A stretch of 64,000 nucleotides of DNA, taken from assembly GCA_004431415.1 (NCBI GenBank), contig QPMI01000525.1:1-64000 (forward strand), in the 5' to 3' direction. Positions 3,001-32,865 of the stretch are shown piece after piece. The DNA is from Cyanophora paradoxa CCMP329 (taxonomy: Eukaryota > Plantae > Glaucophyta). Below the pieces are notes generated by a model. That model worked only from the letters and a program-made list of their open reading frames with translations. It did not search any database and was not told the DNA's origin. A program made the position numbers and the translations under genes. Every line of letters begins with the position of its first letter. Positions within the stretch are counted from its first letter, which is position 1.

Positions 3001-5889
3001 GATGGCAAAAGAAAGAGTCGAAGGATCTAGAAAGATCTAGAGAAAAAGTTCGGCCCGGATCATCCATCTATATACGGACCTGCGATTCGTACTCGGCTGC
3101 GGGGATGGCGCCGATGGTCCCCTCGTGCAGCTCCGCGTAGTCTTCAAGGTACTCGTCGATCTGAGCGGGCGGGGTACACAGATAAGGGCTCGTTGCAGCG
3201 CGCATCGAATTTAAGGTAAGATTTAAGATTTAAGGTAAGAAGATCGGCCGCTTTATAAGATTTAAGATTAGAAGATCGGCCGCTTAAGCTTTGGGCGCCG
3301 GCGCACGTCGGGCTTGGTGAGGGGGCGGACGGTGAGCTGGAGGAGGCCGTTGGGGCGGGCGGCGCCCCCCTCCCGGTCCGCGGGGGCGAAGATCGCCTGC
3401 AGAGTACAGACAAGGTCAGACGGGGCGGCCGCGGGTCCGGAGCGCGTTTCACGACTCGCGTGGAATTTCTTGAGAGGGTCGCTTAGTGACAAAGCGATCG
3501 CGAAGCATGCGCACCTCGGTCTGGGCGAGGGAGAGGCGCGAGCGGAGCTCCGAGCCACACGCGACGACCGCGCCGCTGGCCCACGCGCCCAGGTCCCCGC
3601 CCCGCCACAGGTTCGGGTCCCCGACGGGCCCGGCCACGATCCGCCCCCCCTCGCCCGCGACCTCGTCGTACCCGTCCAGCAGCAGGACCAGCCCGAAGCT
3701 GCGAGAAAGCAAACAGATCAATGAGCGAAAACGAAGGAGCGATCTGGAGGAGAAAATTGCGCACCGGTCCCGGATGGCGGGGAGGGCGGCGGCGGGGACG
3801 CCGAGCCTCCGCGCCGCGAGCCGCCGGAGGGCGGCGAGGGGCCCCGACGGCCGCGGGTCGTCCGCGACCTCGTCGAGGGGTACGAGGACCGTCGGGGGGA
3901 TCGAGGGGCCCGCCCCGCCGTCCGCCGGCTGCGCCCACTCGCGGCACGATTCGCGGTGAAGCCGCCGGAGGAACGTCGACTTGGACGCCCTGGATCAAAT
4001 CGGGATCAAATTTCGGATCAAATTCGAATTCGAGCGATGGAAGAAGCCGTACCCCGAGTCGCCGACGAGGAGCAGGACCTTATGGTGCGGGGCGCGCCCG
4101 TCCGGCCCCTTCGCGAGCTCCAGCTTCTGCGGGCGAGAGTTTCAGCCCTTGCACGCGGCCAGCTCGCGATTGCAATCCGGAGGGGATTTTAGGGGGCCCA
4201 GCTGTGCGTGCACCCCCCTCGAGCTCCGAGATCGAATTAATAAATCGCGCGCACCGCGAGGAAAGCGTTGACCTCGGCCCGAAGGTCCGTCGTCACCTTT
4301 TGATCGGCACTGGCATCAAATCTCTTCCCGATCGCGAGGCAGAGGAAGCTTAAGGGGTCAAATCAGATCGAATCACCTTGGAGGCGGGGCGCGCGGCCCG
4401 CGGGGGCACGTAGGGCTCCGGCGGCTGCGGGACCGCCAGCTCCCGTCGCGCAAACTGTGAAGCCCTCGAAGTCAGAGGGGGCGGGTTCGGGCCCGGCCCG
4501 AGCCAAGGCGGAGGCCGCGGCTGCGCGTGGAGGAGAAAAGGCGTACCCGGGCGACGGCCGCGAGGGCGGGGTCCCGTTCTACGTCCTGATCACGAGGCAC
4601 GTCTAAAATAAGCACGGGGGTACGAGTTCGAGTCCGAAGGGGGTACGCGCCTTGGGCAGGTCGTGAACCCCGGGGCCGGGGGGGGCGGGGGCGCCCCGGG
4701 GCCGCCGCGCGTCGCGCAGGAGAGAGGCGGCGAGCGATTCGATCGCGTCGTCGCGATCAGCCGGCGAGGCGCCCGGCGGCAGGGCCGTCCACTGCCGAGG
4801 CGCTCAGGGATCAGAGGAAGAGCGAAGCGAAGGCGGCGGCTAATTATAGGCACCTCGAACTGCGCGAGGCGGCGGGCGAGGGCCTTCGGAAGGGCCGCGG
4901 CGGCCGCGCGCTGCTCCTCGAAGCAGACGGGCCGCACGCAGCGCCCGTCGTCCACCGCCGCGTCGAGCGACTCGACGCACGCGGCGTCCGCCGCCGTCGC
5001 CGGGCGCGCGACGAGCAGGAATGCGCGCGCGGGGCAGTCCGACGCGTCCGCTGCGGCGCAGGGCCCCGCCGCGCCGCTGCACGCGATCGCAACCGAATCG
5101 CCCGTCAGCCCGTCAGCCGCGCTTGAGCTCGAGCTCGCGCCCCGTAAGGAACCCGGCGAGAGCGAACCAGAGGCGGAAGCCGTACGTATCGTGCAGCTCG
5201 GCGAGGATGCCGCCGGCTGCCGGAACGTCCTCGGGGACCGCGCAGACGTGCACTGCCGGCCGCATCGAATCCAGCAGCTCCTGCGCGCAGAGCGTGAGCC
5301 CGAGCGAGGCGTACGTGCGCGTGCGCAAGCTGGAGGGCTGCGGAAGGCTCACCTGGATGCTTGCGCCCCCATCCGCGTCCGCCACGCCGGCGCCGTGCTC
5401 GGATTCATTCGAATTCTCACACGTGCACTCGCTGGCGCTAGCGCTGGCCATCGGCGGCGGATCGTCGACATCGAGCTCGAACTCGTCGAAGAGAGGGGAG
5501 AGAGGCGGCGATAAGCGCTTGGGAGACAGGCTGAGTGCTGGCGTGCCGTCGCTTGCCCCATCGGTCGGAGGAAGGGAGAGATGCAGGCTCCCGCCCGCGC
5601 TGCTGCAGCTGGCGCTGTTGCAGCGCCTGAGGAGGAACCTCTCCTTAAGCCTGAACGATCCTGAGGCCTTGAGCTGCTTTATGCTGCGCACGCTGCCGGC
5701 GCGCTGGATCGGAGCGCTAGCATCGATATCGGAATCGACCGCGCCCTTTCTCCGCGGCTCATCCGCCTTTGCGCACGCCTTCGATCCGATCAAGGCCGGC
5801 CCTACGATGATGAGATCACCGTTGGAGGCAGGCGCCGCCGATCCCACTGAGCTACGCCGAGCTCTAGCCTGGCCGCAGCTGTTGCCCAT
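1..5889 (-). CDS. NLR-like protein, copy A (TIR-like - NACHT - pentapeptide repeat - WD40); multi-exon, 3' end outside window
   Basis: ATG at 5889 (MGNSCG). Spliced exons give a TIR-like segment (AFLLVARPATAADAACVESLDAAVDDGRCVRPVCFEE), P-loop VLLLVGDSG|ASKSTFL, Walker B LVLLLDGYDEV, NACHT motif FSHPSFQDFFASE, pentapeptide AAANAATVL...GADLQGADLTGCDLTGANLAGADIRGA and WD40 blades (LAGHAKAVTAVSLS, SASEDGTAIVWD). It is the reverse-complement paralog of 19244-25322. Confidence 0.85.
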
Positions 5890-6725: not shown

Positions 6726-7829
6726 ATGAGCTCGCCGTCGGGCGTGAACAGTAGGACGCGGAATCGGCTGCTGGATGCCCGGCAGCGGTCGTTCGAGCTC
6801 GGGGACGGGCAGCCGCAGCCGCCGGCCAGGGACGGCAGCCCGGCGAGGCCGCGGAACGGGTCCCGTCGCTTCACGATCGGGTCCATCATGCCCGAGAAGC
6901 TCGGCCTGCCGCCGGCCGCCCCCGAGGAGCCGGCGAAGGACGGGGACTCGGACTCGGGATCGGAGGGCGCCGCCGCCGCCGCAGAGGCGCTGGCGCGGGC
7001 GCAGGCGAAGCACGCGGCGCAGATGGAAGCGATGAAGGCGCTGCTGGAGCGCGAGCGGCGCAGGGCCGAGGAGGCCGAGATGCGGGCCGAGATGGTGCGC
7101 ATCTGATCCCGAATTCGATCTGAGATTCGATCTCCTCATGGGGCGCGCGGGCGGACAGGCGGAGCGCCACGCGCAGGAGGCGGCCGAGGAGGCCAAGCGG
7201 CGCGCCGAGGACACCGTGGTGCGGTCCCTTTACCCCCCCCTCCCATCCCCCCCCCACCTCCGCCCCCACCTCCGCCCCCCCCCCCTCCCCCCCCCAAGGG
7301 GCTCGGGGTCTGGGGACCAGCCTGGCAGGGGACGCATCGCGCCAAACAGCTGGGGACGCCTGGCGCCGTGTAGCTAGCTGCTTGGCGAGCGCGCGAGCCA
7401 CGCCTTGGGCTAGCGCCACCCTAGGCCCCCGCCCCGCCCTCCAGCGCGCCTAGCTACTGCGTTGTACGGAAGCCGGCGAGCCGCGCCTTGCGCCGCGCCC
7501 CCTCCGCCCCGCAGGCGGAGGCGGAGCGGCTGGGGCGGGACGCGGCGCTCGAGGCCGAGCGGCGCGCCCTCGAGGCCGAGGGCGACGCCGACCGCCGCGC
7601 CGAGGAGGTGCGCCGCGCCCTGTACCCGGGCTTCGAGCCGGACTTAGGAGCTTAGAAACTAATGAGCCGGCTTAGGCGGACTCGCTCTCTGGCTGGGCTG
7701 ACGCGGTGCGTCCCGGGCGCGTGCGCGTGCGGGCAGGCGGAGCGGCGGGCGGAGGAGGCGCGGCGGCGGGCGGAGGCGGCGCACGAAGAGAGCGCCGCCT
7801 CCACCAACGTCGTCCGCACCTCCGAGGAG
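6726..7829 (+). pseudogene. Truncated 5' copy (first four coiled-coil exons only) of the TIR/beta-helix gene
   Basis: MSSPSGVNSRTRNRLL...AEMRAEM|AERHAQE...|AEAERLG...|AERRAEE...SEE matches the exons at 18373-17369. Homology stops in the poly-C intron (7840-8230) and I found no downstream exons (AWRRILADL, TIR, beta-helix) on this strand. Confidence 0.7.
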
Positions 7830-8235
7830 GTGCCGTTCGCCCCCCCCCCCTCCCCCCCCCCCCCCCCCCTCTCCCACCTCCCAACCCTCACCATCCTCTA
7901 AGCCCTCCCCTAACCCCCCTCTCTTCCCTCAACCCGCCCCTTCTCCCTGCCCTCCTGCCCCACCAACCACCGCCTCCTAACCCCTCCCTTCCCTCCTTGG
8001 CTCCTCTCCCTTCCGTCTCCCGGCTCTCTCCCGCGCCCTATGCCCCCCCCCTCCCCGCTCCCCCTCCCTTCCTCTCCACTCCTTTTTCCCCTCGCCCCCG
8101 CCCCTTTAACGTACCCTTCGTTTGCCTCCCCCACCCCCTTCCCGGCTCCCCTTCCTTCCTTCCATCTCTCGCCCGCCCCCCCCCCCCCCCCCCGCCCCCG
8201 CCCCCCCCCCCCCCCCCCCCGCCCCCGCCCCGGCA

Positions 8236-8931: not shown

Positions 8932-11900
8932 TCAGGCCGAGGCGACGATGTTGTTCTGCTGCTTGAAGCTGAGGGACCCGCGGCGCGCGGGGGCGGCGCC
9001 CTTCGTCAGAACGACCACCCCCCCGCTCTGCGGAGCCGAATTTCAGGACATATGAGAATGAGGCACTACCCCCGCATGGCCGGGGCAGGCATAGGGCCCG
9101 GGGCTCAGGCGTCAGATTATTAGAAACTAAACCCGCTATATTATATATTCTTATGTGCCGCCGAGACTGGCGGGGGTCCGGACGTCAGAAGGGAGCCACA
9201 GGGCCGCGCGCGCGCGCGCGGGAGGGGGCGGAGGGGGGGGGGGGGGGGGGGGGGGGGTGACGCTGGGACCCTCGGGCGGCTCTTCATTAACTAGAACATA
9301 GAACATAGAAGATCGAAGAACATCTTAAGAAGAAAGCCTTGGGTGGCCTATGAAATCAGGCGCGGACCTGCCGGAAGGAGCCCGCGATGCCCTTCTCGAA
9401 CCGGTTGTCGGCGATCGTCCCGAGGGCGTCCGCCGCCACCTGAGGCGATTGCAGAGCACAGAACTCGATTAAGAGCAGAACTCGAAGAGTAGTGGGGGAG
9501 ATAGATTAATATGTAGATTTTCTAATAGATTCGCGTCTGAGCCAACGGAAATGCACAGATCTAGAGCGGACCTGGGTGCTCATCTTCTGGTTATAATAGA
9601 TTTATATATAGATCTTCTAATAGATTCGCGTCTGAGCCAACGGAAATGTACAGATCTAGAGCGGACCTGGATGCCCATCTTCTGGTCGCGGACGCGGTTG
9701 GCGCGGACGGTCGGCTCGGCGCCGTCCCCGACGAGCACCGCCAGTCCCCCATTTTTGAAGATCTGAGCGGCCCGCCCATCAGCGAGCGCCATCTCTAAAT
9801 CTCTACGTATACTTATCTGTCGATCTACAGTGATCTAAGAGACTCAGTGAGACAAGCTTAAAGAGGCTCACGACGCGCCGCCCAATAGGTACTTCGAGAT
9901 CTTTATATACGTAGCCACCTATTTCTCTAAAGCTATGCGATCAGTGATCGCTACATCTCTCTCTCTCTCTCTGCCTATCCATCTATTTATCGATCTAGAT
10001 CTCTAAACAAGATCTAGAGGCTCTAAACGCTCCGCCCTTAATGAAGACGAGAGGCCCTCGACGGCGGCGGGCGCGCACCTCGCAGCGCTCGATGACGGGG
10101 CGGGCGGCGGCGGAGGTCACCACAATCGCATTCTTCGCGCAGTCGTGCACCAGGCACCTGCGGGCCGGGCCGGGCCGGGGTTGGGCCCGATCGCGCGCGT
10201 GCTTTTGCGGACGGTGGGGGCGGTGCCGTCTAGAGCTCCGCGCCTAAACTACCAAGCTTATATAGCTTACGCTCTCTTAAGCTTAAGTTCTAGCTTTACG
10301 GTCGATCCAGATCACTTCAGCTTTACGCTCTTTTACGCACTTGCGGACGGTGGGGGCGGTGACGTCGGGGTACGCCCCGCCGCGGATCTCGAGGGCGCCC
10401 CGGGCGGCGTCGAGGACGGCCCCGGAGACATCCAGCTCCTCCAGCGCCGCCCGGCTGCATTGTGTTGCGAAACGTTAAGCGATATATATTATATGACTTA
10501 TCTGCTAATTTGTTTATAGTTCTCAGCGCCGATCTTCTATCTTGAGCTTGAGCTTGGGTTGCGGTGGGACGGCACCTCCCGGACTCGACCACGATGGCGG
10601 GGTGGCGGGCGCTGCGGCCGCGGATGCACAGCCCCTTGACCTGCCGGCCGGAAGGCGAATTCGAATCAACGTCAGCTGCAGCCGGACGCGATCAAGCTGC
10701 TCCAGCTAAAAATAGCTCACCTGCCCCGTCGCGCGGGGACCCCTCAGAGAGAGCACCGTCCCGACGCTGCAGCGGACCAGCCACGTCATGATCAGTCAGC
10801 GAGCCGGCGCAGCTAATCATGACTCCAACAAGAAGCTGAAGGGCGTTCCGTATAATCCGACAAAAGAGAGAAGCTTAAGGGGGCCGCCGGCGCGCGCGCC
10901 TGTACTCAAGGACGGCGTCGTGGGAGCCCTCCAACGAGATCTCCTTCTCGACGGTTACGGCGCCCCAGTAGCGCCCGGGCGCCACGTAGATCGTCTGCGA
11001 TCGGAGCGCGGGGGTCTAGGCGTCAGCCCCTTGCGCTTCTTGCCCGGGTTTCTAGATCTAGGCCTAGACTTCGGGGTCTAGGCGTCAGAGAGGCTCTCGC
11101 GCGCGGTCGGTCTTGGAAGGATCTACGCGCCAGCTCCTTCTCCGCTCTATCCGCCGGGCCGCTCTCTTCCTCCCCGGTCTCTGGAATGCGAAGGGTTGCC
11201 TTACGGACCTGGCCGGCCGAGGCGTACTGGACGGCGGTGGCGACGCTGTCGAGCTCCCCAGCCCGGCCCCTGTCGACCGCCCCCGCAGAGCCCGGCCCCA
11301 GGTCAGCGGCCAGGCGCGCGCTAGCGTCCAGCGCTAGCGCTAGCGGCTTAGGCCTAGGACAACACTGACGGGGAAAAGCGATCATCCCCAGCAGAGATGC
11401 GATCAGCAATTCGAAGCGCTAGGGTGACCTCCTTGAGCTCGTTCGCGAGGGGGGCGGCGCCGCGCATGCGCACGAATCGCACGAATTCGAAGCGCTAGGA
11501 TGATTTCCTTGAAAGAAATAGAAGAGATATAGCCTTAGACACGCGATCGGTGTCCTATAGCTATTTCACCTCTAACGGTCCCTTAGACTATATCTCTCAG
11601 CGCTGTGAATGCGCACCGGGCGTCGACGATGATGGCGCCGCGCTTCCGCGCCGCCTCCCGCCGCCCCGCCTCCCTCCCCCGCGCCTCCTCGAACCGCGCC
11701 TGTACGCGCGCGCCCGCCCCCGCGCACGCACGTAAGCTCCGGTCCCAAGATATCATAGTATCACATGCCCCGGCTCTAATAGAAAACTAGAGACCGTACG
11801 CTTAAGGCTCATTATAAGCGCGACAGATCCTTTAATCTGATGCCTCGCGAGTATTCTTCTGTAATCTCGAACCCTCTCTCAAACATCTGTCTTAGAATAC

Positions 11901-14900
11901 AAGCGCACCTCCTCTTCCATGAGGATGTTCTGCTTGAGGACGGGGGTCCCGTCTAGCACCTGCGCCCGGGGAGCGAACTCGAAATCAAACTTTGAGAGCA
12001 CTTATCAGAAAAGCTCCTTCGGGGGGCGCGCTCGCCCGCCTTAACGCCGCCGGACTCGGCATAGTCGATTATCGCTTGGAAGCTTACGAACGCTCAAAGC
12101 TTGAATTCGAGCTCCCGAGAAACGCGTTACCCGCCTAATGTGCTGGAAAGCTTGAAAGCTTGATCATGAAAGCTTAACGCTTGAATTTAAGCTGCTAAGA
12201 AACGCATTCGATGCCTATCTCTGGCTTTGTTTCGCGCGCGGACCTTTATGCCGCCCGACTCGGCACAGTCTCTTATAAATATATATATATATAACGCTTA
12301 AAAGAACGCTTTAAAAAAGCATAAATTGTAGCTTCGTTTTGCGCATGCGGACCTTGATGCCGCCCGACTCGGCGTAGTCGATGTCCGCGATGCGCTCCAG
12401 GGTGTTCCCGAGGATCGAGCCCGCCCCGCCCGACGAGACCTGGGGGGGGGGGGGGGGGGGGGGGGGTTGGGTAGGGGGCGGGGTGAGATGGAGGAGGGGA
12501 AGACAGAAGGCGGGGGAAGGGTGGGGGGAGGGGGGGGGAGGAGACTAGTCCGATGTGTTGGGGGGGCGGGGGGGGGGGGGGGGGGGGGGAATCGATGGAG
12601 GAGGGAGGCGAAGACTAGCCCGATGTTCCTCACGCTTCACGTAGATTGGGTGGGTGGGTGTGGGGTTGGCGGGGGGTGGGGAGGGGAGGGGGCAGGGGGC
12701 AAGGAACGCGCCTGGATGCCCCTGGCCTGGTCGTAGACGTGGTTGCCCTTCACGAGCGGCTGCGCCCCGTTGGCCACCGCGACGCCCGCCAGCCCGTTCT
12801 TGAAGATCTGCAGATCAAATCGAAGGCAAAATCAGCAAGGGACGCCCGGTTTTTAAGCTAAAATAAGCTAAGGACCTCGCAGGACTCGACGCGGCCCTTG
12901 CAGGCGTCGAGGAGGACGCCGGCGCCCTTGCCGCCGTGGACGCGGCAGCCCCGCACGAGGGGGTCCGCCCCCGCCGAGGCCTGCGTGCGTGTATACGCAT
13001 AGTTAATAGTATTCGATAGCAGCCAATAGTATAATAGCTATTAATAGTAGTTGATAGTATATTATTTAGTCGATAGTGCGTTGGGGTGTCCTTAGAGCTC
13101 GACAGCTACAAGGAAAGTAGTCTTAGTTCGAGCTGGGCCTGTCTGGTCTCTCTGACCTCGACCCCCGCCTCGCGGCTGCCCTCGATGTCGCACGCGTCGA
13201 GCGTGCCCTTCGCCCCCTTCGAGAAGACCACGCCCGTCTGCACGATAGGAGGAATTGATCGAAGAAAGAAAGAAAAAGACGGGAGAGAAGAGGGGCGAGC
13301 GAGCCTGTCCGCAGTTCTTGATGGAGCAGGCATGAAGCATTGGCTCCGTCCCTTCGCCAGAAACCTCCACGCCGCGCCTGCGCGCGCGTGTATAACAAAT
13401 TATAAGATCGCATCAATTAAGGCTTAAGCTAAGTTTGCGTAAAAACGGACCCGGCGCTCTCCACGAGGAGTCCGTCCAGAGCCGCTCGGCTCCCGCCGGC
13501 GATCCGGACCGCGGCGCCGGCGGCGGCGCCCGTGGCGCGCACGGCGAAGCCGCGGAGCGAGGGCGCGGCGGCGCCCTCGCAGACCAGCGGCGGGGCCGAG
13601 CCGCACTGCACGACGGCGTCCCGCGTGCCGGCCACGTGGACGTCCTTGTCCAGGGTACAGGATTCCTCGTAGGTCCCGGGGGCCAGGAAGACGCTCTGCC
13701 CGGGCGACGCCTGTGCGATCGCCTGCGCAGAGTTTAGTAGACCGCGGCCGCGGGCCCGGCGCGAGGCCGGGCCTGGGGGTACAGGTAGCGATATAGGGTC
13801 GAACGGACCTGGGAGAGGGTCTTCGAGATCCCGGGGAGTCCGCGAAAGTCCACCAAGATGCCTGCAGCTAAAAGAGTTAAAAAGGAAAGAATTAAGGGAT
13901 CGGCCGGAGCTAAAGAGTTTATAGATTAGAGCCTAGGCCTACGACATCATCTATCTCTAATTGACCGTATACGTATACGTAAGAAAGTGAAACCATCTAA
14001 GATGCCTGCAGGCACGCGATTCGTCATGACTCAGTGATCAGTAACATTGCAGTCACGTCGAGATCTAGAGCAATCCGCGCTCGAAGTTCGCGGGGAATTC
14101 GCACCGCCGCGGGCGAGGCACTGCCTGAGGAGCGGCCGCGCGCGCCGCCGCGCCGCCTCGAGCTCCCGCTCCCGCTCCGCGTGGGCCTTCACCTGCGAGC
14201 GAAGCAAGCGGCCGGTCGGACCCTCCCTCCCTCCCTCCTTTTAGATTCTTCAACTGAAGTTCCTCTGTTTCTCTATTATATTAGCGCTCTTGTTTAGCGC
14301 TCTTTGGCTGAATTTACATATTCTAAGGCTCCCTCCGCTCCTTCAACTGAAGCTCCTCTGTAGCTTGCGTATATATAGCTTTTAAGCTTCTTATAGAACT
14401 CCATCGCCAATAGCTTGCGCGCGCGCGCTCTCTCTCTCTCTGTCTCGCCCACACACACCTTCCCCGCCACCTCCGCCCCGGCGCCCTCGAATTCCTCCGC
14501 CTCCGCCGCGCTGACCACCGCCGCTCTGCGCGCGATCGCGAACTCAATTCTTCGCTTCGGATTCGATTTTTCGAATTCGTTTCGCGTACCCCGGGGAGAC
14601 GGCCTTGGCGAGGGCGGTGGCGTCCCTCGTCAGGGCGATCGCGAACCGGGGGCGCCAGGGGTACGCCTTCGCGAAGCGCGGCTCCTCTGCGCATACGAAC
14701 AGAGCCCCGTTAGATTCTAGTACCCCTTGCGGCCGACACGGCCGGCTCCGCGTCCCGGAGTCCGGTCTCACCCTCGCAGTGGCACTCGGCGTAGGATTTG
14801 GAGACGAGGGCGACCAGCGTCCGAGACTCCTTCAGCGCCAGCTGCCCCCGGTGGGGTAAGGAGCGGGGGGGGGGGAGAGGAGCGGGGGGGGGGGGGGGGG

Positions 14901-17900
14901 GGGGTTCGGCGCGCGCACCGCCACCTCGTCGGCCCAGATCTCGCCCGTCTCGGTGCCCTTGTCGTACCTGCGGCCGGCCCGTTCATTTCCGAGCTTGGGA
15001 GGGTAGGGCGAGGGGTGGGAGTGGGTAGGAGGAGGAGGGTGGGGAGGAGGAGGAGGGTGGGGGTGGGAGTGGGGGGGTGGAGGCGGGGGCGGGTTGAGGG
15101 GGGGGAAGGGGAGGGGGGCGAAGCGAAGGAGGAGGAGGGAGGGGAGGGGGCAGGTGGAGCCCCAGTGGGGCGGGCGGGCGGCGAACCACACGGCGAGGCC
15201 GGAGGCTTCGAGGCGGGCGGCGAGGCGCGCAGCCAGCTCCACGTCCTGCACCCCAAACAGTTGAGCGCGAGGGCTTCTTATTATAAAGCCCTATAATAAA
15301 ATCAAGGACTCTTGAATATAAGATTACAGGCCGACCTTGTGCGTGCTCGAGATGAAGGCCTCGTAGCGGTAGGGCGCGCTCCCCCCCAGCAGCGCCATCG
15401 GCGAGTCTGCCGGAGAGTTCGGGATCGCAGAAATGTTCGGGATCGAAGAAGAGTGTTCGGGATCGAAGAAAGATGTTCGGGATCGAAGAATAGAAGCACC
15501 TGGGGCGGCGCCATCGCCGATGCGGTCGTCGTGGAGGGAGTCCGCCCCCGAGAAGCCGTGCGGCTGGCCCTGGCCTTCGTTCGTGCCCGCGCCCGCCTCG
15601 GCCGATGCTGCGGGCCCCGATCAGCTATTAATAGCTATAGGCGACGGGGTACGGCGCACGGAGGCCGCTGCCGGCGGTGGCTGCGGCGGCGGCAGCGGCG
15701 TCGGCGCGCCCCGCGCGCCTGCCGGCCTCGTACGCCTGCCGCGCCCCTGGCCCTCGACGTCAGCGACCCTTCTCAAAGCTCCTAAGCTTATCTCCGCTAT
15801 TCCGATTCTAGAACTTCTTGGTTCGAGTTTCTTCGTTCCCAAGCGCACCTCGAGTTCTATATGCTATACACCTTATGCTCTTCTCAAAGCCTAAAGGGCG
15901 ATAGGCGATAGGCCTTCTCTCAAAGCTCCTAAGCTAGGCTTCGCGGGTCCGATTCTAGATTAGATCTAGATCTAGCTCTAAATGAGGTCAGATTCAGATT
16001 CAAGATCAGATCCTTAAAGCTTGCATAAAACAGCTTCTCGGAGATGGCTCAGTTGACACAATTGTATAACGCTTTATTCAGCTCGACTTCAGTCGTTGAG
16101 CTGAGCCAACGTCGCTGCGAACGCGTTTCCAGGCGCACGGACCTCGGCCCAGCGCTTTTCGGAGATGGCTTTAAGACTTTAAGATCTTAGACTCGTGACT
16201 CGTTGAGCTAGGCCAAGGTCGCTGGGCTAGGCTAGGCTAGGCTTCGCGCGGACCTCGACGCGGCGCTTCTCGGAGATGTCGAGGCGCGCCTCGAAGTCCC
16301 CCCTGAGGCGCTCCTCCTGCGGAGGAGGAGGAGGCCGCAGGCAGTCAGAGGAGGCGCGAAGGTCGGACAAGGGGAGGGTGGGTGGGGGGCGTCAGGGCCC
16401 GGCGGCCTCGGAAGACCTAGCGAGCGCTATCTCGGGCTTCTCTGGCTCTCTAGCGTTATCTAGATTGCTGCAGGCTGAAGCTAAGCCGAAAACGGATGTA
16501 CCAAAAAGGTCGCACCTCGGCGTGCTTGATCGTGAGATCCTGGACTTGCTTCCTCAGGTCCGCCAGGATCCGCCGCCACGCCTGCCCGGCCCGAGCGGGA
16601 GCGCGCGCGCGGCGCGAAGGTGAGCGAGCGGCTGTGATCGATATCGATCGAGTTTGGAGCATTCCTAGAGAGCGGTGCGGGGCGCGGCGGCGCCTGAAGT
16701 GGGCACCCCGGCCCAGGCGCCGGCTCAAAGGAGCCTTCGTATGGGGACGTACAGGCAAGGAAGAGGGAGCCGGAGGAAGGGAGGGGGGGCGGAGGGGTAG
16801 GGTGATGAAGGGGTACGGAGAAGGCGCGGGTGGTGGGAGGTGGGAAGGGGCGTGGGCGTCGGGCGGGAGGGAGGGAAGGCGGGGGAGTAGGGCAGACGAA
16901 GAGGTGGGGGGTACGGAGCTTAGAAAGGGGAAGGGGTGTTGGGTGTGTGTGTGTGTGCGGAGGAGAAGGTGTCGGAGGGGGTTAGGAGGGAGGTGGTACG
17001 CTCGAGGGGTGACTGGGGGCGGGGAGGGGGAGGGAGGGGGGGAGGGAGGGGGGCCGGGTAGAGAGAATAGGCAGAAGAAGGGGTGGGGTAGGGGTGGGGA
17101 TGGGGTTTGGGGGGCGGGGTGGGAGGGGAGGACCGGGGGGGGGGGGGGGGCAAGCGGGGGGGGAGCGGGGGGGCGGCGGGGGGATGTGGGGGGGAGCAGG
17201 GGGGAGCGGGGGGCGGGGGGGAAGGGGGCGGGGCGTCCCAGGCGCCGGCTGAAAGGATCATTCGTATGGAAGACGTCGGGAGAGGGTGTTGGGGGGTGAG
17301 AGGGGGCGGGGCGGGGAAGGAGTCGGGGGGAGCGGGGGGGAGGGGGGGGAGGGGGGGGGTAACGGTACCTCCTCGGAAATGCGGACGACGTTGGAGGAGG
17401 CGGTACTCTCTTCGTGCGCCGCCTCCGCCCGCCGCCGCGCCTCCTCCGCCCGCCGCTCCGCCTGCCCGCACGCGCCCGGGCCGCGCCCCGTCAGCCCAGC
17501 CAGAGAGCGAGTCCGCCTTAGCCGGCTCATTGGTCGCTAATTTCCTAAGTCCGGCTCGAAGCCCGGGTACAGGGCGCGGCGGACCTCCTCGGCGCGGCGG
17601 TCGGCGTCGCCCTCGGCCTCGAGGGCGCGCCGCTCGGCCTCGAGCGCCGCGTCCCGCCCCAGCCGCTCCGCATCCGCCTGCGGGGGGGGGAGGCGAGGGT
17701 CAGGGCGGCTCAGGGCAGCAAGCCGGGCAAAGGGGCGAGGAGCTGATTAGGGAGAGGGAGGTCTTCAGCAAGGCGTCCCCGGCTGTATGGCGCGAGGCGT
17801 CTCTTGCCAGACTGGTCCAGACTGGGGGGGGGGGGGGGGTGGGGGGGGGGGAATGGGAGGGGGTACAGGGATCGCACCACGGCGTCCTCGGCGCGGCGTT

Positions 17901-18373
17901 TGGCCTCTTCGGCGGCGTCCTGCGCCAGGCGCTCCGCCTGCCCGCCCGCGCGCCCCGTGAGGAGATCGAATCTCAGATCGAATTCGAATTCGGGATCAAA
18001 TGCGCACCATCTCGGCGCGCATCTCGGCCTCCTCGGCCCTGCGCCGCTCGCGCTCCAGCAGCGCCTTCACCGCCTCCATCTGCGCCGCGTGCTTCGCATG
18101 CGCCCGCGCCAGCGCCTCTGCGGCCGCGGCCGCGCCCTCCGATCCCGAGTCCGAGTCCACCTCTTTCGCCCGCTCCTCGGGGGCGGCCGGCGCCAGGCCG
18201 AGCTTCTCGGGCATAGATGCGATCGTGAAGCGACGGGACCCGTTCCGCGGCCTCACGGGGCTGCCGTCCCTGGCCGGCGGCTGCGGCTGCCCGTCCCCGA
18301 GCTCGAACGACCGCTGCCGCGCATCCAGCAGCCGATTCCGCGTCCTACTGTTCACGCCCGACGACGAGCTCAT
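8932..18373 (-). CDS. Coiled-coil - TIR domain - tandem right-handed parallel beta-helix (pectin-lyase-like) protein; roughly 30 exons
   Basis: Phase-compatible splicing joins E/A/R-rich coiled-coil exons to YEAFISSTHK|DVELAARLAARLEASGLAVW|YDKGTETGEIWADEVA|LALKESRTLVALVSKSYAECHCE|EEPRFAKAYPWRPRFAIAL (TIR_2 pattern, ~15370-14590). Two beta-helix units follow, each with an N-cap (AIAQASPGQSVFLAPGTYEE; VATAVQYASAGQ|TIYVAPGRY) and repeats such as IFKNGLAGVAVANGAQPLVKGNHVYD. TGA at 8934-8932. Some internal exons are uncertain. Confidence 0.8.
15416..15490. repeat. Intronic minisatellite, ~19-bp unit gttcgggatcgaagaa(n) x4
   Basis: Directly visible tandem copies inside the intron preceding the first TIR exon. 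Confidence 0.85.
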
Positions 18374-21300
18374 TTGACAGGCTCAGAGGATAGTAGCTGC
18401 AGGCTGGCTGCGTTGTAGCTACAACGTTAACACCGATGTCTTGTCGGGCCTGCAGCTGAGCCTGTTCAGCCCCGGAAACCCTGCAGGCGGCGTTTCGTTA
18501 ACAGAAGAAGCTGAAAACAAGCCTCACGCGGCTTCCCGATTGCTGAGCGAGCCGATCGCATGCGCACCGGTTGTCGATTCAAGATAAGGCAACGCTGCGG
18601 CGAGGCGCGCTTAGAAGAAGCGCCCAGATCAGAGCAAACACGCCAGGCGCTCACTGGGACGCACGATCGCTGTCCCCAAGGCACACCTGCTGTTAGCTAG
18701 GCCTAGGACTGGCGTACGCGTCGTGTGTTCGGGCGCCTGCCAGCCCACTTGGTGGCCGCGGGCTGAGCAATCTAACGAACAGCACGATGTGCTGCAGGCT
18801 ACGATGACGTCGACGCTAGCGCACGGCTCTGATCGACGCAACCGCTCGGGGGGGAAGCTGGAGGGGGGTAGTCGGACGGGCCCGGCAATTAAGCTCGGCG
18901 CGGCGCCGCCGGCCCGGCCCCGCGCGCGCTGCGCAGCTGCCGCCTCCCCGAGCGCCCCGTTTCGACGTCGACGCGCTCTTCTAGAACTGGCCATGGGTCT
19001 CGCATTGTCGTGCGCGCGCGATGACGTCGACGCGGTCGACGTCAGCTAGCGCTGGCGGTTTTGAGGGAGGGGGGGGGGGAGGGGGGGGGGAAGTTGGTGA
19101 AAATGAAGGACTTGAGAAGCATTTTCACTTCGAATTCTTCGGGCGGGGACCGTTCGGGCTGTTCAGTGCCGGCGCGTAGAAGGCTAGAAGCACGACGCAT
19201 GCCGCAGTGCGCGTCGTCGCGCGCGTAGCATGAGCAGCAGCAGATGGGCAACAGCTGCGGTCATGGCCACGCAAGCGCTGGAGCTCGGCCGCGGCGTGGC
19301 TCCCTTGGATCCGTCGCTGTGGGCTCGGCGCCTGCATCCAACGGCGATCTCATCCTCGCAAAGCCGGCTTCGATCGGATCGACATACGCAAAGTCAGCAG
19401 ATGAACCCCGGCGCAGAGGCGCAATCGATTCCGATGCGCACATCGACCCGCATGCATTTGCGAGCGCCCCGATCCAGCACGCCAGCAGCGTGCGGAGTTT
19501 GAAGCAACTGAAGGCGTCCCTGTCGGGGTCGCTGAAGGAGCGGTTCTTCCGTCACAGCGCCAGCAGCAGGGGTGGGAGCTCGAGCATGCAGCTCTCAATC
19601 TCCGGCTCAGCGGCGCTCAGTCTGTCTCCCAAGCGGTCGTTGCCGCCGCCTCCTCGAGCTCCTTCTCCCCGTTTCGAAGAGTTCGAGCTCGACGTCGAAG
19701 ATTCGTCGCTGATAGCTAGCGCTGATCATGATCATGCATATGCGAATTTGACTGGAGCGGAGCGCGGCGGGCCCGAGGCGCCGGCGGACGCGGATGGATC
19801 CGGAGGCCCAAGCATCGAGGTGAGCCTTCCGCAGCCCTCCAGCTTGCGTACGTACGCCCCAGCCCGCTCGGGCTCACGCGCCGCGCGCAGGAGCTGCTGG
19901 ATTCGATGCGGCCGGCAGTGCACGTCTGCGCGGCCCCCGAGGACGTCCCCGAGGCCGGCGCCGTCCTCGCCGAGCTGCAAGACACGTACGGCTTCCGCCT
20001 CTGGTTCGCTCTCGCCGGCCGCCGGTTCCTTACCATGGCCAGCTCGAGCGCGGCTGATCATGTCGGGCTATCCGGTGGCGTGCAGCGGCGCGGCGGGGCC
20101 CTGCGCCGCACCGGACGCGTCGGACTGCCCCGCGCGCGCGTTCCTGCTTGTCGCGCGCCCGGCGACGGCGGCGGACGCCGCGTGCATCGAGTCGCTCGAC
20201 GCGGCGGTGGACGACGGGCGCTGCGTGCGGCCCGTCTGCTTCGAGGAGCAGCGCGCGGCCGCCGCGGCCCTTCCGAAGACATTCGCCCGCCGCCTCGCGC
20301 AGTTCGAGGTGCCTTAGCCGCGATTTTAATTTGGCTTCGTTCTTCCTTTGAGCCCTGGGCGCCTCGGCAGTGGACGGCCCTGCCGCCGGGCGCCTCGCCG
20401 GCCGATCGCGACGACGCGATCGAATCGCTCGCCGCCTCTCTCCTGCGCGACGCGCGGCGGCCCCCGGGCGCCCCCGCCCCCGCCGGCCCCGACCTTCACG
20501 ACCTGCCGAAGGTGCGCACGTACTCCCTTTGAACTCGTACCCCCCGCGCTAACTTTCAACGCGCCTCGTGCACGTGGTCAGGACGTAGAAGGGGATCCCG
20601 CCCTTGCGGCCATTGTCCGGGTGCGCCTTTTCTCCTCCACGCTCAGCCGAGACCCCCGCCTTGGCTCGAGCTCGAACCTGCCCGGAGCCCCTAGCCTTCT
20701 GATCATGACTTCGAGGGCTTCGCAGTTTGCGCGACGGGAGCTGGCGGTCCCGCAGCCGCCCGAGCCCTACGTGCCCCCGCGGGCCGCGCGCCCCGCCTCC
20801 AAGGTGATTCGATCTGATTTGATCATGATTCCTTGCTCTGCCTGGAAAGAGATTTGATCCCGATCAAAAGGTGGCGACGGACCTTCGGGCCGAGGTCAAC
20901 GCTTTCCTCGCGGTGCGCGCGATTTATTAATTCGATCTCGGAGGGGCGGCCACGCAAATCAAAATTAAATCAAAGTTGGCCCCGTTGAAATCGGAGGGTA
21001 CAAGCACAGCTGGGCCCCCTAAACTCTCTTCCGGATCGCAATCGCGAGCTGGCCACGGGCTGAAACTCGCCCGCAGAAGCTCGAGCTCGCGAAAGGGCCG
21101 GACGGGCGCGCCCCGCACCACAAGGTCCTGCTCCTCGTCGGCGAATCGGGGTACGGCTTCTGTCGCTCGAATTCGATCCGAAATTTAAATTTGATCCCGA
21201 TTTGATCCAGGGCGTCCAAGTCGACGTTCCTCCGGCGGCTTCACCGCGAATCGTGCCGCGAGTGGGCGCAGCCGGCGGACGGCGGGGCGGGCCCCTTGAT

Positions 21301-24300
21301 CCCCCCGACGGTCCTCGTACCCCTCGACGAGGTCGCGGACGACCCGTCGGGGCCCCTCGCCGCCCTCCGGCGGCTCGCGGCGTGCAGGCTCGGCGTCCCG
21401 GCTGCCGCCCTCCCCGCCATCCGGGACCGGTACGCAATTTTCTCCTTCGGATCCTCGCGATCGTTCGTTCTCGCTCGCGATCGTTGATTTCTTTGCTTTC
21501 TCGCAGCTTCGGGCTGGTCCTGCTGCTGGACGGGTACGACGAGGTCGCGGGCGAGGAGGGGCGGATCGTGGCCGGGCCCATCGGGGACCCGAACCTGTGG
21601 CGGGGCGGGGACCTGGGCGCCTGGGCCAGCGGCGCGGTCGTCGCGTGCGGCTCGGAGCTCCGCTCGCGCCTCTCCCTCGCCCAGACCGAGGTGCGCATGC
21701 TTCGCGATCGTTTTGTCACTAAGCGGCCCTCTCAAGAAATTCCACGCGAGTCGTAAAACGCGCTCCGGGCCCGCCCCGTCTGACCTTGTCTGTACTCTGC
21801 AGGCGATCTTCGCCCCCGCGGACCGGGAGGGGGGCGCCGCCCGCCCCAACGGCCTCCTCCAGCTCACCGTCCGCCCCCTCACCAAGCCCGACGTGCGCCG
21901 GCGCCCAAAGCTTAAGCGGCCGACCTTCTTATCTTAAATTCGATTCGCGCTGCAACGAGCCCTTATCTGTGTACCCCGCCTCCTTCAGATCGACGAGTAC
22001 CTGGGGGAGTACGCGGAGCTGCACGAGGGGACCGACTACGCAATCCCCGCCGCCGAGTACGAAGCCCAGGTCCGTTGGCTTGTTTAAATTGACACCTTCT
22101 ATCGCTTGTTCTTTCTTTCTTTCTTTCTTTGAAGCCCAGGTCCGTATACGTATACGTGTACGTTAACATGTACATGGTAGATGGATGATCCGGGCCGACC
22201 TTATTCTCTAGATATAGATCTTTCTAGGTCCTTTGAATCTTTCTTTTGCCGCCTCCAGATCACTTTTTCCCTACTGGGCTTTCCGCATTTCGACCGTTGG
22301 ACGCGCTATCGACGGGCCCCAACGGCCGCACGGACTGTCTTTCTTTCTATGGATTCCCCTGCCGCCATTACTTCTCTTCACTTCGCCACCGCCACCGCCT
22401 CCTCCTCTTTCCTTTGATTTTACTTTCCCATTCCGGATCCGCTTCTTCTTCTCTGCCGCCACCTGCAGCTGACGCGCGGCAGCTGCGGCGGCGGACGGGG
22501 ACGGCGTCGCTGGCGCAGAACGGCCTCTGCCTCGCCATGGTCGCCCAGGTCCTTCCCGTTCTCTCCACCCGGTGCGCCAAGCTAAGCCTTACGGCTCGAA
22601 TGTTAAGCCTTTTCCCTTAAGCTTCATGATCATGATCATGATCAATTGCAAGCCTTCATCGCGTCCTTTTTCGAGTACATTCCAACTTTGTGTCTCAATC
22701 GTAATCCAACGCATTCTGCCGGCAGCGTGGGCGTGCGGGGCCTCTACAGACTCTTCCTCGAGGCCATCATTCGCCGCGAGGTGCGAATCCAAGCTTAAGA
22801 AAACTGGAACACAGCGCCGCGAACGTTGCCACTGATCATGACCAATCCGCTCACCCGTGCGCAGATCGCCCGCGCCGGCGGCGGCAGCGGCGACCGGGCG
22901 CGCCTGCTGCCCCCCTGCCTGGCCCTCTGCCGCCGCCTCGCGGCCGCGATGCTCCGCGACGGCCGCCGCCGCGTCTCGGTGCCCCTGGACCCGACCCGGG
23001 TCATCCCGGAGGAGGAGGAGGCGGGCGGAGATCCAGACGAGGCGGGGCGGGCGCTGTGCGGGGGGGCGGGCCCCGCGCTGCGCGAGCTCTGCCCGCTGCG
23101 CCGCTGGCGGGCCCGCGGGCGCCTGGTCTTTGCCTTCTCGCACCCTTCTTTTCAGGACTTCTTCGCCTCCGAGGCCCTCCTCCAGTCGGTGCGCGCGTCA
23201 CAAACGTACACGTGCGAATCCCTTTTGTGCTTACTTGGATTTGGCTCTTCTCGCAGCTCGTGCCCGACGGCAACCCTAGGCCTGAGGGCACGGGTGCGGA
23301 GGAACGGGGCGCGTACATCTCAGCTCGGTCCGCCCCCTATGCCTTTTGCTTCCCGCCCTTCTCCAGGGCTTAAGGGGGCACCCCCGGCCCTTCGCGCAGC
23401 CTCTGGCGGGGCGGCTCGGCGCTCGTGCGGTTCCTCGCGGACGCCATCCAGACAGAGGGCCGCCCCGGCGTCGCCTCGGTCCGTCCATCCGCGCTTTAAA
23501 TCTACCGCTGCGCTTCGAAGTCGAAGACAGCGTCTGACGTGCACACGCCTCGCCAGTCTCTGTTCGCGCTGGTGATGGCGAGCCGCGAGGCGGGCGGCTC
23601 GGCCGTGGCGGCCGCCAACGCGGCGACGGTCCTCGCGGCCGCCGGCGTGTCGCTGGCGGGGCGGGCCCTGCGGGGCGTGCGCATCGCCGGCGCATGCCTC
23701 CGCCGCCTGGAGGCGGCGGGGGCCGACCTGCAGGGGGCCGACCTGACCGGATGCGACCTGACGGGCGCCAACCTCGCCGGGGCCGACATCCGCGGGGCCA
23801 AGCTGGAGGACATAAACTACGGGATTACGCCCCCGTTTCAAGTCGCCTGCCCGCCAAACGCCCTCTCCGCGTCGGCGAACGGGCGGCGCCTGGCGGCCAC
23901 GTGCCGCGACCGGCGGATCCGCGTCCTGGATGGCGTTACGGGGGCAAAGCTCACGGCGTTGGGCGGGCCCGACTCGGGATGGAAGGCGCTGGGGCCAGTC
24001 GCCCTCTCGTCGGTGCGGCGACGCCGTCATTTCCTTAAGCGTGTACGTGTTCAGCGGTGCCTGACGACGCGGGGCCTCAGGACGGGCTCCGCCTCGCCTC
24101 GGCCGTGGTGGCGGCCGACGGCTCCGTCTCGGCGAGGATCTGGGACGCCCAGACGGGGGCCGACGTCGCCGTCCTCGACCGCGACCCGACGGGCACCGAG
24201 GGGCCCGCCGCCTGCGTCGCCCTCAGCGAGGTGACAGGCTTCGAAAATGGATTCGCGTGAAACCGCGCTAATTTTGGGGCAGGACGGGTCGCGGGTCATG

Positions 24301-25322
24301 GTGGGGACGAGCGACGGAGGCGTAAGACTGCACGACGGGCGCACGGGCCGGCTGCTCCGCCGGCTCGCCGGCCACGCCAAGGCTGTCACTGCCGTCTCCC
24401 TCTCGGCGGTGCGCAAGCTTGAGAGGGACCCTGCAAGACGTGCGGGGTTTTCCGCCCCGTTCGACTGTGGCACCGCAGAGCGGCAACCGCGCGCTCTCTG
24501 CGTCCGAAGACGGCACAGCGATCGTGTGGGACGACTGCCTCGGCGTCGAGATCGCGCGGCTCTCGGGCCACACGCGCGGCATATGCTGCGCGGTGCTCTC
24601 CGCGGACGGCCGCCGCGCGGCGACGTGCGACGGGCCCGCCGTGCGCGTCTTCTCCGCGACGACCGGCGCGCTGCTCGTGACGCTCCCGCGGGCCAACGCC
24701 CTCGAGTGCGTCACGGCGCTCGCCATCTCTTCGGTGCGAATTCCAGGCTTTCTTTCAATGCGGCGCTGATTTCGAGGTTTCAAATTCGCAACGCTGTTCG
24801 AAGGGCGGTTCGCGGCTCGCGACGGGATCCAGCGACGGACGGTTGGTCCTTTGGGACGCGGAGGTGCGATCCGATCCGATCCGATCCGATCTGAGCTCAG
24901 CCGACTCTGCTTGTCGCAGGCCGGCTCGCCGCTTGCCCAGCAGCGGGTGGGGCGGGACCAGATCCTATCTGTGGCACTCTCCGCCGCCGGCGACCGCCTC
25001 TTCTCCACGATGCGTACGCTATCGTTGAGCGGGCGCATCCACGTCTGGGACGCCAACTCACCCGCCGAAGTGCGACCATAGCCAAATGCCGCGCGCCTAC
25101 CTCCATGCCGCCAACGAGGCCTATGTTTGAGATTGGGTCTGCAGGCGGGCGAGTCTGGCGAGGCGCACGCCCCCGGCCACTCGCTCGACGTCCAGTGTGT
25201 CGCCGTCTCGTCGGTGCGGCCCTCTTCCTCATCCAATGCCTTCAATTCAAATGTCTTCTGATTTCAAAGCAGGACGGGGCGCGCGTGGTCTCTGGCGGAC
25301 ACGACAAGTGCCTGCGCGTCTT
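17360..25322. repeat. Right arm of the inverted segmental duplication
   Basis: Reverse complement of 1-7840 with substitutions and intron indels. Confidence 0.95.
18374..19243. promoter_or_regulatory. Putative bidirectional promoter between the divergent TIR/beta-helix and NLR-like genes (duplicate at 5890-6725)
   Basis: 870 bp between two divergent ATGs; partly conserved in the duplicated arm. No specific motifs identified. Confidence 0.55.
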
Positions 25323-27210
25323 CGACGGCAATGGCGGCGCGGAGCTCAGGCGCATCCAGGTGCGCTCGCCATTAATTATATAATACTCGACGCTTTTACC
25401 GGCGTCGACGGGATTCACGCGCGCTCTGAGCTTGGAGATTATATGTCGCAGGTCGGAGTCGGCTCGGGCTCCGTCTGGTCCGTCTCGCTCTCGCCGGTGC
25501 GCAGTTTTTCGGAAATGAAGAAAGGAATGAATCCCTGACCTGCTCGCGTCTGACGTCCGTCGCGGCGCAGTGCGGGCGGTGGGCGGTCGTTGCTGCATGG
25601 GACTTCGTCGCTCGCATCTTCGACACCTTGACCGGCGTGCAAGTGCGCTGCGTGCACCCCGCCTCGCAGAAAGAAAGTTTATGTAAGTCTATATCTGAAT
25701 GATCGCGCTCGCAGGTCGGGCGTCTGAAGGGGCACGAGAAGGAGGTCCTCGCCGCTGCCTACTTTCCGGTTCGCATTTTCAGGAAGAAGCTTTGAACGGC
25801 TAGCTTTTACTTCAATGCGTGGTAATTGTAAGAAACCATAGTAGTTATAATATAAGCGTCCCTGTTTGTTCCTCCACGCTCGTCTAACGAATCTCCGCTG
25901 CTCAGGACGGGAATCGGGTGGTGACGGGGAGCCACGACCGGACGGTCCGCATCTGGGACGCGTCGAGGGGCGAGGAGCTGCGGAGGATTGCCGAGCACAG
26001 CGATACCGTCACCTCCGTCGCCGTCTCCCCGGTCCGCGTGTTTGGCTCGCTTCTCAGCTCCAGCTGAAGCTTTAACTGCCTAGGATGGGGAATGGCTCGT
26101 CTCTGGCGGCCACGACGGATGCGCGAGGATCTTCGACGTCGCCACGGGGCGCCAGGTAGGCAGACAGTTTTCAGTGTGTGTAGATGCTTATTTGTTATGA
26201 GCTAAGATGCGGGTTTTGCGATCGCAGACACATTTCCTCTCCACCCACAAAGCGTGGGTCGAATCCGTCGCGGTCTCACCCGTGCGCCCTCTGCTTTAGA
26301 CCAGAGTTCGATCAATTCGCGCGTTTGACGCGCCGCGCTTCGATCTCAGGACGGGAAGCGCGTCGCGGCGAGCTGCCGCGACGGAGGGATCCGAGTCTGG
26401 AGCGTCAACAGCGGCACCGAGCTTCTCCACGTGCGCTCGCTCGAAATTACGTGTGATTAAACCTCGCTCTGATTTGCGCGTTCTCGCAGATGCGGGGGCA
26501 CGTCGGGCCCGTGTGGTCCGTCGCCTTCTCGCCGGACGGCGCGTGGCTGGCCTCTGCCGGCGAGGACGGCACCGTCCGCGTGTGGGACGGCGCCACGGGC
26601 TCCGAGCTGCAGCGGCTCGCCGGCCACGCCGGCGCCGTCCGATCCGTCGCCGTCTCCTCCGTGCGTCGGCGTTTCGGCGCCTCTGACGTCGACCACGACC
26701 GAATTCGAATGCTCGACAGACGGACGCCGGCGCCCGCATCGTTTCGGGCGGCGCGGACGCCTCCGTTCGCGTGTGGGCGGCGCCGCCGCCGCTGCAGCCT
26801 CCGACGCGGGCGGGTGCAGAGGCGGGACCTGCACATATTTGCCCCCCGGTATGCTATACTTTCTTTCCGCACTTCAATCTGATCTGATCTGATCTGACCT
26901 CTTCCTCCTTTTCCCAGCGCTTCCTGTGCCTGCGGCGCATCCAGCGAACAACCAAGCTCGAGATGTCCAAAGTTAAGGTGCGATTAATTGGTGGCCCTCG
27001 AATTCAACTTGCAGCCTTTCCCTCCCAAGCTTTTATATATAGATATCAATAGACCTTGCATGGCGATCGCATAAGCTTCAGCTTGAGGGCGATTCTTCTG
27101 CCGGGCCGTGGATTGACCGCTGCTCGCGGCAGATGGATGCACCGAGCTCGAGCTTGAGCTCGAGCTCGAGCCCGCCGAATTCGAAGCCTCATGCACATAT
27201 GCCAGTCTAA
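19244..27210 (+). CDS. NLR-like protein, copy B: MGNSCG - degenerate TIR - NACHT (STAND NTPase) - pentapeptide repeat - 14 WD40
   Basis: ATG 19244; intron 19820-19890; TIR-like ~19906-20450; P-loop VLLLVGESG|ASKSTFL across intron 21151-21210; Walker B LVLLLDGYDEV ~21514-21546; FSHPSFQDFFASE ~23135-23173; pentapeptides ~23610-23810; 14 WD40 blades ~23830-26780 (e.g. RGHVGPVWSVAFSPDGAWLASAGEDGTVRVWD). The last exon and stop (27208-27210) are tentative. Confidence 0.88.
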
Positions 27211-27550
27211 TATTATTGATGAGCCCCGTGAGATTGCAATCCTGCAGGGTTGCCAATTGGCATTATTATTTATGTAACTACTAGGCTAATTGAGTCTACG
27301 TTACTAGGTTAGCGTTATCGCGATCGGAATCGTGATCGGAAAACTCGCCGATAACTTGGCGATAATGTATAAGAAGGATCTGGCCCAGTGGATTCTGGCA
27401 GTGGATGCGGATCCGAAGATTCCGATTCTTTTTCCGAACGGCTTCAAATTCAGGTCATGGACATTGATGATTGATGGGCAATGATATCGATGGCCCGCTG
27501 GGCCGCTCGGACTCCTCGCCGACTCGACGCCGAGTCCTCGGAGCCTACTA

Positions 27551-32700: not shown

Positions 32701-32865
32701 ACCGTAATGCAGAAAATTAAGGTCTGTACTTTATTATGTCATCCCCAAATTATGTCGCCTCGGATGTGAGAGAACGACATAATTTGGGACCGTCATAGTA
32801 GAGCACGCTCAGTGGTACCCCATCAAATTTACCGTCCCATGCAAGCCTGAAAATAATTTGGGGAC
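32701..32865. mobile_element. Degenerate fragment related to the 27551 MITE family
   Basis: ccccatcaaatttaccgtcccatgcaagcct resembles cccccacgattaccgccccatacaagcct (27681-27709). Contains a 14-bp hairpin cccaaattatgtcg / cgacataatttggg. Confidence 0.45.

Follow-up and report, generated by a model that had tools for sequence, protein, structure and literature searches.

Background

Receptors that combine a NACHT-type STAND NTPase with a C-terminal WD40 array are known from fungi, in which HET-E/HET-D and NWD2 belong to this class and NWD2 activates the effector encoded by an adjacent gene. In NACHT-pentapeptide-WD40 proteins of Mortierella, Mycoavidus and ciliates, the stretch from NACHT to WD40 holds an AAANA-type helix and then pentapeptide repeats; we found no paper on proteins of this type. 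TEP1 is a TeTIR-NACHT-WD40 protein whose TeTIR is active (bioRxiv 10.64898/2026.09.21.753143), and a protein with TIR, nucleotide-binding (NB) and WD40 regions (TIR-NB-WD40) is known from Chondrus (PMC7145615). In land plants, sensor and executor receptors such as RRS1/RPS4 and CHS3/CSA1 of Arabidopsis occur as pairs (PMC13725568). We describe here a locus of the glaucophyte alga Cyanophora paradoxa CCMP329 in which a NACHT-WD40 receptor gene with a degenerate TIR domain (gene A) lies head-to-head with a gene for a TIR-beta-helix protein (gene B). The locus is part of a 64,000-nucleotide window (contig QPMI01000525.1 of assembly GCA_004431415.1, positions 1 to 64,000, forward strand), to which all positions refer.

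A sequence-only reading of this window had proposed that gene A senses or scaffolds and that gene B supplies the enzymatic signal, as a sensor/executor pair. We found that gene A is transcribed, spliced and under purifying selection, that its TIR domain carries serine in place of the catalytic glutamate, and that it was duplicated together with its neighbor. The reading we favor, to which we give an even chance, is that gene A encodes a receptor whose TIR serves as a scaffold and recruits an active TIR in trans, with gene B as a co-duplicated neighbor. No paper was found that describes this locus, or TIR or NACHT genes of Cyanophora, and the TIR repertoire of this alga had no description in the literature searched.

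Gene models and transcription

The surrounding window is GC-rich, intron-rich eukaryotic DNA, and both genes find their closest relatives among the EukProt proteins of C. paradoxa. The start codons lie at 18373 (minus strand, gene B) and 19244 (plus strand, gene A), giving two divergent genes 870 bp apart, just as the sequence-only reading had stated. Models built from coordinates comprise 1587 amino acids in 36 exons for gene A and 1033 amino acids in 33 exons for gene B, each with a frame that is open from start to stop, no internal stops, and GT-AG or GC-AG introns. The joined models were used for frame and for GC content at third codon positions (GC3) only; similarity searches were run exon by exon or with the public model P0106. 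Two public models match the window directly, tig00020999_g16967 (P0106) for gene A and g16963 (P0107) for an inverted paralog, A'. Model g16967 holds exons 2-12 of gene A letter for letter, begins with a different first exon that lacks RNA-contig support, and ends at exon 12. The splice sites of gene A are kept in A'. No public protein model was found for gene B, the GC3 of which is 0.93-0.95 throughout. Splicing as predicted for gene B includes three GC-AG introns (13304, 12711 and 10899, minus strand), and GC donors also occur at exon 4 of A'.

RNA support for gene A covers exons 1-4, which are joined as modelled in RNA-type contigs of X17 and X19, probable RNA runs from two separate studies. 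These contigs, at depth 11-15 in both runs, are contiguous over 19155/19176-19817, 19889-20002, 20085-20306 and 20369-20512 with no differing letters, and since they begin at 19155 and 19176, the MGNSCG start of gene A is inside the transcript. For exons 1-13 of gene B there was no RNA contig in X17, X19 or X21, and in the two runs with gene A no piece of more than about 28 letters was listed on these exons, the bins on exons 11-13 being empty. Contigs drop rare transcripts and show presence rather than absence, so these results point to a difference in level at most. The proposed splicing was thus borne out for the first four exons of gene A, with no contig for gene B, and co-expression, which the sequence-only reading had named as a check, did not appear in contigs that record presence only. 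A constitutive promoter shared by both genes would not be expected to leave A contigs without B contigs. Judged by identity, the spacer gives no sign of the extra constraint that such a promoter might impose: it is 81% identical to its copy (aligned columns), below the 88% of the gene A introns.

The receptor gene

The TIR domain proposed for gene A appears after splicing of exons 2-4. Pfam returned no TIR match for it even at E 10, and an atlas search with exon 3 alone gave no matches; other comparisons nevertheless assigned it. Exon 3 aligned ungapped with a TIR profile over betaC-alphaC-betaD (hhalign P 5e-4), and the ESM features of the domain matched TIR_2 clusters at 0.93, with 173 shared features and the best 10/10 in agreement. 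With 49 further TIR sequences as a guide, AlphaFold gave a model that reached a predicted local distance difference test (pLDDT) score of 91.7 and best matched the TIRs of MyD88 (template modelling (TM) score 0.70), MAL and SARM1 (TM 0.56-0.70, identity 17-20%), a fold match that is partly circular; the unguided fold, at pLDDT 46, was uninformative. When the 69 exons of both genes were scored singly against TIR profiles, the top three were A3, B12 and B10. The domain of gene A is a genuine TIR. Its motif ACIESL, read as ACVESL in A', places serine in a column that is glutamate in 86/86 references, in agreement with the pattern AC[I/V]ESL reported from the sequence, and the betaA motif is likewise eroded. 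Judged from these residues, the domain is very probably non-catalytic.

NACHT was the top Pfam family for the region that follows, at E 0.012 and under the curated cut-off, and the region had no match among solved structures or plasmids. The Walker A motif of gene A, GESGASKST, is split by intron 8. Serine (codon 21215-21217) replaces the glycine before lysine, while lysine and the final serine are retained, and the canonical GxxxxGK[ST] is absent. The same change occurs in A' (GDSGASKST), so that the P-loop GxSGASKST noted earlier holds for both copies. The Walker B motif, LLLDGYDE, is intact and canonical. In Ras, the matching change lowers nucleotide affinity. Pentapeptide repeats were recognized clearly by Pfam, and when bacterial genomes were scanned with the exon that encodes them, only pentapeptide proteins were returned. 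Equally clear was WD40, found on exon 21 (E 6.6e-8) and exon 33 (E 1.9e-17); the WD40 exons cross-match. The order of N-terminal signalling domain, NACHT and WD40 is the tripartite plan of NWD-type proteins.

The MGNSCG start of gene A is identical in A', although exon 1 is 62% identical overall, and from its sequence the N-terminus may be acylated. In the 5' leader, out-of-frame ATGs precede this start at 19199 and 19230, the latter not kept in A'.

The neighboring TIR gene

Assignment of the gene B domain as TIR-like comes from collinear exons. Exon 12 has TIR as its sole Pfam match (positions 52-69, E 0.13), and in TIR profile columns exon 9 ends at 10, exon 10 covers 11-29, exon 11 covers 37-46 and exon 12 covers 49-67, an order that is collinear from betaA to alphaC. 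Together with the top ranks of A3, B12 and B10, this order exceeds what chance would give. This match rests on single-exon scores, and exons 13-14 had no TIR score when run singly. An ungapped test with a position-specific scoring matrix was weak, placing B9 and B10 correctly and misplacing B11-B13, A2 and A3.

The sequence-only reading had the glutamate of HCEEEP in register in gene B. It does align, provided that one residue is taken as deleted upstream, and alanine stands four residues on. The spacing from the betaC serine to the alphaC cysteine is 7 in gene B and 8 in 84/84 motif-matching references and in RPP1. Proline follows the glutamate, as in 0/86 references, and serine replaces the tyrosine that is conserved after betaA in 83/86 references, a set that leans to one TIR_2 subfamily and was partly chosen on that tyrosine motif. 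All five Cyanophora paralog TIRs (5/5) have canonical spacing and a glutamate followed by a hydrophobic residue. A sequencing error at HCEEEP was ruled out by a DNA contig with no differences from the window over these letters. Alternative splice sites that would restore the spacing were also ruled out, the deletion lying within exon 12 and the proline within exon 13. In SARM1 the matching tyrosine and tryptophan matter for activity and their mutants are impaired (PMC8266388), and several glutamate-bearing TIRs are inactive, so that glutamate alone is no predictor of activity (bioRxiv 10.64898/2026.04.20.719644). Gene B keeps its glutamate, yet because of the deletion before the alphaC cysteine, the proline after the glutamate and the serine for tyrosine, its competence as an enzyme appears doubtful, and the proposal that it supplies enzymatic signalling was not borne out.

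Gene B has a coiled coil, a TIR and beta-helices, and no NB domain. Its exon 17 matched 102 proteins at E<=0.001, the best being Cyanophora Beta_helix proteins at 45-51% identity. Within the gene, exon 17 matches exon 26 and exon 21 matches exon 31 (56%, both 96 nt). Through exon 17 the family extends to 20 or more Cyanophora models, spread over many contigs, whose heads include TIR, TIR-WW, SAM-TIR-ARM, kinase, RING/Sina, lipase and F-box; the Joint Genome Institute (JGI) metagenome protein P0108 is also a TIR-beta-helix protein. Such a tail with swappable heads resembles a sensor, and the polarity of the two genes might be reversed, with gene B sensing by its beta-helices and the non-catalytic TIR of gene A relaying the signal as an adaptor, as MyD88 or MAL do for Toll-like receptors. 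The guided model of the gene A TIR fits the adaptors MyD88 and MAL best, and gene A is present in standard cultures, while gene B may be inducible. The MyD88 match, however, was obtained with a guided model and is only marginally above that to SARM1, gene A lacks a further effector domain that could take up the relayed signal, and NACHT-WD40 proteins are receptors in the known fungal systems (HET-E/NWD2). We consider reversed polarity very unlikely.

Compared with the window, DNA contig X1 carries eight inserted G residues in the G-rich intron 4 of gene B (16790-16990); these differences are assembly homopolymer errors outside the coding sequence.

The inverted duplication

Bases 1-8200 of the window are an inverted copy that holds A' to the window edge, the spacer, and only exons 1-4 of gene B (B'). 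After exon 4 of B' there is no TIR or beta-helix exon, though a B' body elsewhere below 95% identity would have escaped; read-through of B' ends within intron 4. The rate of synonymous substitution (dS) is 0.10 for both the A and the B pair, and the cassette was copied as a unit. An assembly echo was ruled out by this dS and by the public model that A' has of its own; the C-rich breakpoint of B' may be a misjoin. The ratio of non-synonymous to synonymous substitution (dN/dS) is 0.38 for A against A' (p 1e-9) and 0.36 for exons 1-4 of B against B' (p 0.003), both indicating purifying selection. For the TIR exons of gene A alone it is 0.53 (p 0.09, not significant), the highest within the gene. 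Protein searches found no ortholog of gene A or gene B in another species.

The first WD40 blade (23820-24012 against 1285-1480) is 80% identical between A and A', whereas the pentapeptide part next to it, within the same exon, is 98% identical; dS is 0.23 against 0.08, and dN/dS of the blade is 0.45, with no sign of positive selection. The frame and splice sites of B' are intact. The inverted arms (1-8230 and 17000-25322) enclose exons 5-33 of gene B as a spacer, and the break falls within intron 4. Were the arms to recombine, this spacer would be inverted and the TIR-beta-helix body joined to the 5' end and promoter of B', an event of which we saw no evidence.

These data bear on whether A and B are a dedicated pair, in which the WD40 part of A (and A') would do the sensing, TIR-TIR contact would hold or activate B, and B would cleave nicotinamide adenine dinucleotide (NAD+). 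Head-to-head placement at 870 bp, serine in A against glutamate in B in the catalytic column, a Walker A change confined to A, and duplication of the cassette as a unit at the same dS all fit such a pair, and RRS1 likewise lacks the glutamate and functions without its P-loop (PMC13725568). Against it stand the missing B contigs where A is present, the spacing, proline and serine of the B active site (the reference set being biased to one TIR_2 subfamily), the impaired SARM1 mutants at the matching tyrosine and tryptophan (PMC8266388), the poor predictive value of the glutamate (bioRxiv 10.64898/2026.04.20.719644), and the make-up of B, which has no NB domain, belongs to a variable-head family and has its own putative sensor. 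The copy also bears on linkage, which the sequence-only reading had named as a check: the cassette was copied once, but the copy keeps only exons 1-4 of B. As A' was kept without a TIR-bearing head-to-head neighbor, strict pairing of A with B is weakened. A dedicated pair is unlikely in our view, and of the proposed sensor/executor pattern there remain two TIR-like domains, an A without glutamate, its altered Walker A and the joint duplication.

A further possibility is that both TIRs are dead or decaying, with gene B recently silenced or drifting and the TIR of gene A vestigial, while gene A signals otherwise or is a decoy or repressor. The several active-site departures of B, the absence of a B transcript among the contigs, the truncation already undergone by B', and the high dN/dS of the TIR exons of A are in keeping with decay. 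The introns of B are also 2.5x longer than those of A (median 180 nt against 72 nt), and introns 6, 22, 29 and 31 carry partial copies of the 3' end and donor of the preceding exon (16140-16170, 12040-12270, 10205-10230 and 9500-9690). Decay is harder to reconcile with a 1033-codon frame held over 33 exons at a GC3 of about 0.95, with purifying selection on exons 1-4 of B, and with a gene A domain that still models as a complete TIR. We regard decay of both domains as a lesser but real possibility.

Features of the window

Positions of the features are collected in Table 1. Downstream of gene A, about 8 kb (27300-35300) at 47-56% GC are palindrome-rich, without clear genes, and include a 7-bp tandem array (33060-33370); this stretch is possibly the remains of a non-autonomous transposon. 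A spliced gene at 35735-36900 (plus strand), starting MAEKLELLCPIC, encodes by eye a RING and zinc-finger (Sina/TRAF-like) protein, and Sina RING/zinc-finger heads also occur on some beta-helix paralogs of gene B. An open reading frame of 559 amino acids at 50082-51758 (plus strand) has a weak PPR_long match (E 0.003).

Table 1. Coordinates of genes and domains at the C. paradoxa locus
Feature	Position	Strand	Remarks
Gene A	19244..27210	+	MGNSCG start, disordered N-terminus, TIR-like, NACHT, pentapeptide, WD40
MGNSCG start	19244..19261	+	candidate myristoylation and palmitoylation signal
Degenerate TIR domain of gene A	19891..20460	+	exons 2-4; Ser codon 20192-20194 in catalytic-Glu column
NACHT-type STAND module	21077..23478	+	Pfam NACHT top family, motifs read directly
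Pentapeptide repeats	23695..23811	+	Pfam PF00805, E 2.9e-12
WD40 array	23850..26790	+	about 14 blades by eye
Intergenic spacer	18374..19243		870 bp, between start codons
Gene B	8932..18373	-	coiled coil, TIR, two beta-helix modules
N-terminal coiled-coil region of gene B	16254..18373	-	exons 1-6; low-complexity, E/R/A-rich, by composition
TIR domain of gene B	14459..15372	-	exons 9-14; Glu codon 14684-14682, then Pro
First pectin-lyase-like beta-helix module of gene B	11909..13722	-	exon 17 matches
Second beta-helix module of gene B	9368..11320	-	internal duplicate of first
Paralog A' (g16963)	1..5889	-	exons 1-25 present; leaves window at its start; same Ser substitutions
Truncated B'	6726..8230	+	exons 1-4 only; homology stops in C-rich intron 4 near 8214

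Discussion

It is hypothesized that an acylated N-terminus would keep the gene A receptor at the membrane, where its WD40 propellers would bind a ligand. The NACHT module would then cluster several copies of A, perhaps with weak nucleotide dependence owing to the Walker A change, and the clustered TIRs would nucleate assembly with a separate, active TIR protein to yield an NAD-derived signal, possibly in an immune role. This genome has many TIR proteins, any of which could be the active partner in place of B. Gene B would be an unusual representative of a distinct beta-helix family whose heads are interchangeable, and its position beside A would reflect the abundance of such genes here and the joint copying of the two. 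Without clustering, the chance of one such neighbor pair is 0.2-0.4 if the families are assumed to hold 100-200 genes each.

Several observations favor recruitment in trans. Two studies show transcription and splicing of gene A with no detectable B; A and A' are under purifying selection with both serine substitutions kept; A' was retained though its own head-to-head neighbor has no TIR; the beta-helix of B carries many heads across many contigs; and the spacer is no more conserved than the introns. The canonical paralog TIRs further mean that better executors than B exist in this genome. Other points weigh the opposite way. The reciprocal pattern, in which a receptor without the glutamate and with an altered P-loop faces a divergent neighbor that keeps the glutamate, is that of plant pairs. 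Gene B may be low or inducible, the TIR of gene A could be vestigial given exons without significant selection, and no partner in trans was identified. Gene B lies about 3 kb from A', between both receptors, and one B could serve both. That A and A' are pseudo-TIR NACHT-WD40 receptors that flank and activate a single non-NLR TIR-beta-helix enzyme, evolved independently in a glaucophyte and expressed only upon induction, strikes us as decidedly improbable.

In a TIR-rich genome, head-to-head position and a reciprocal glutamate pattern are weak evidence of pairing, and a working sensor/executor pair is here no more than a possibility. Were the pair functional, the division of labor between a catalytically dead TIR for sensing and an active one for execution would have arisen outside land plants, on unrelated scaffolds, in the lineage that branches earliest within Archaeplastida, and the two-gene system could be tested in E. 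coli. Were it not, the locus would still provide an algal example of an NLR-like receptor that is expressed, is under selection and carries a pseudo-TIR.

The plant pairs RRS1/RPS4 and CHS3/CSA1 resemble this locus in their divergent genes, a receptor TIR without the glutamate and a relaxed P-loop in the sensor, but both of their partners are NB-ARC receptors, whereas here a NACHT-WD40 gene stands beside a gene without an NB domain (PMC13725568). In plants the TIR of the executor is highly canonical and the executor is constitutively bound to its sensor (PMC13725568), while the TIR of gene B is atypical and no co-expression was seen. With one NB partner where those pairs have two, the locus is not a member of the RRS1/RPS4-type pairs, although by analogy it may work in a similar way. 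Gene B shares with the Cyanophora proteins g13970, g9712, g15404 and g1009, and with P0108, a TIR followed by a pectin-lyase-like (FBXO11-type) beta-helix; it differs in an extra long coiled coil, a second beta-helix and an active site that departs from the family. The TIR of gene A shares its fold with those of MyD88, MAL and SARM1 but is fused to a STAND receptor. Among NACHT-WD40 STAND receptors (HET-E/HET-D, NWD2, TEP1 and the Chondrus protein), gene A has in common an N-terminal effector-type domain, a STAND NTPase and a C-terminal WD40 sensor, and is set apart by a TIR without the glutamate, an acylation-like start, pentapeptide repeats and the glycine-to-serine change in Walker A. The AAANA-type helix and the pentapeptide repeats are common to gene A and the NACHT-pentapeptide-WD40 proteins of Mortierella, Mycoavidus and ciliates.

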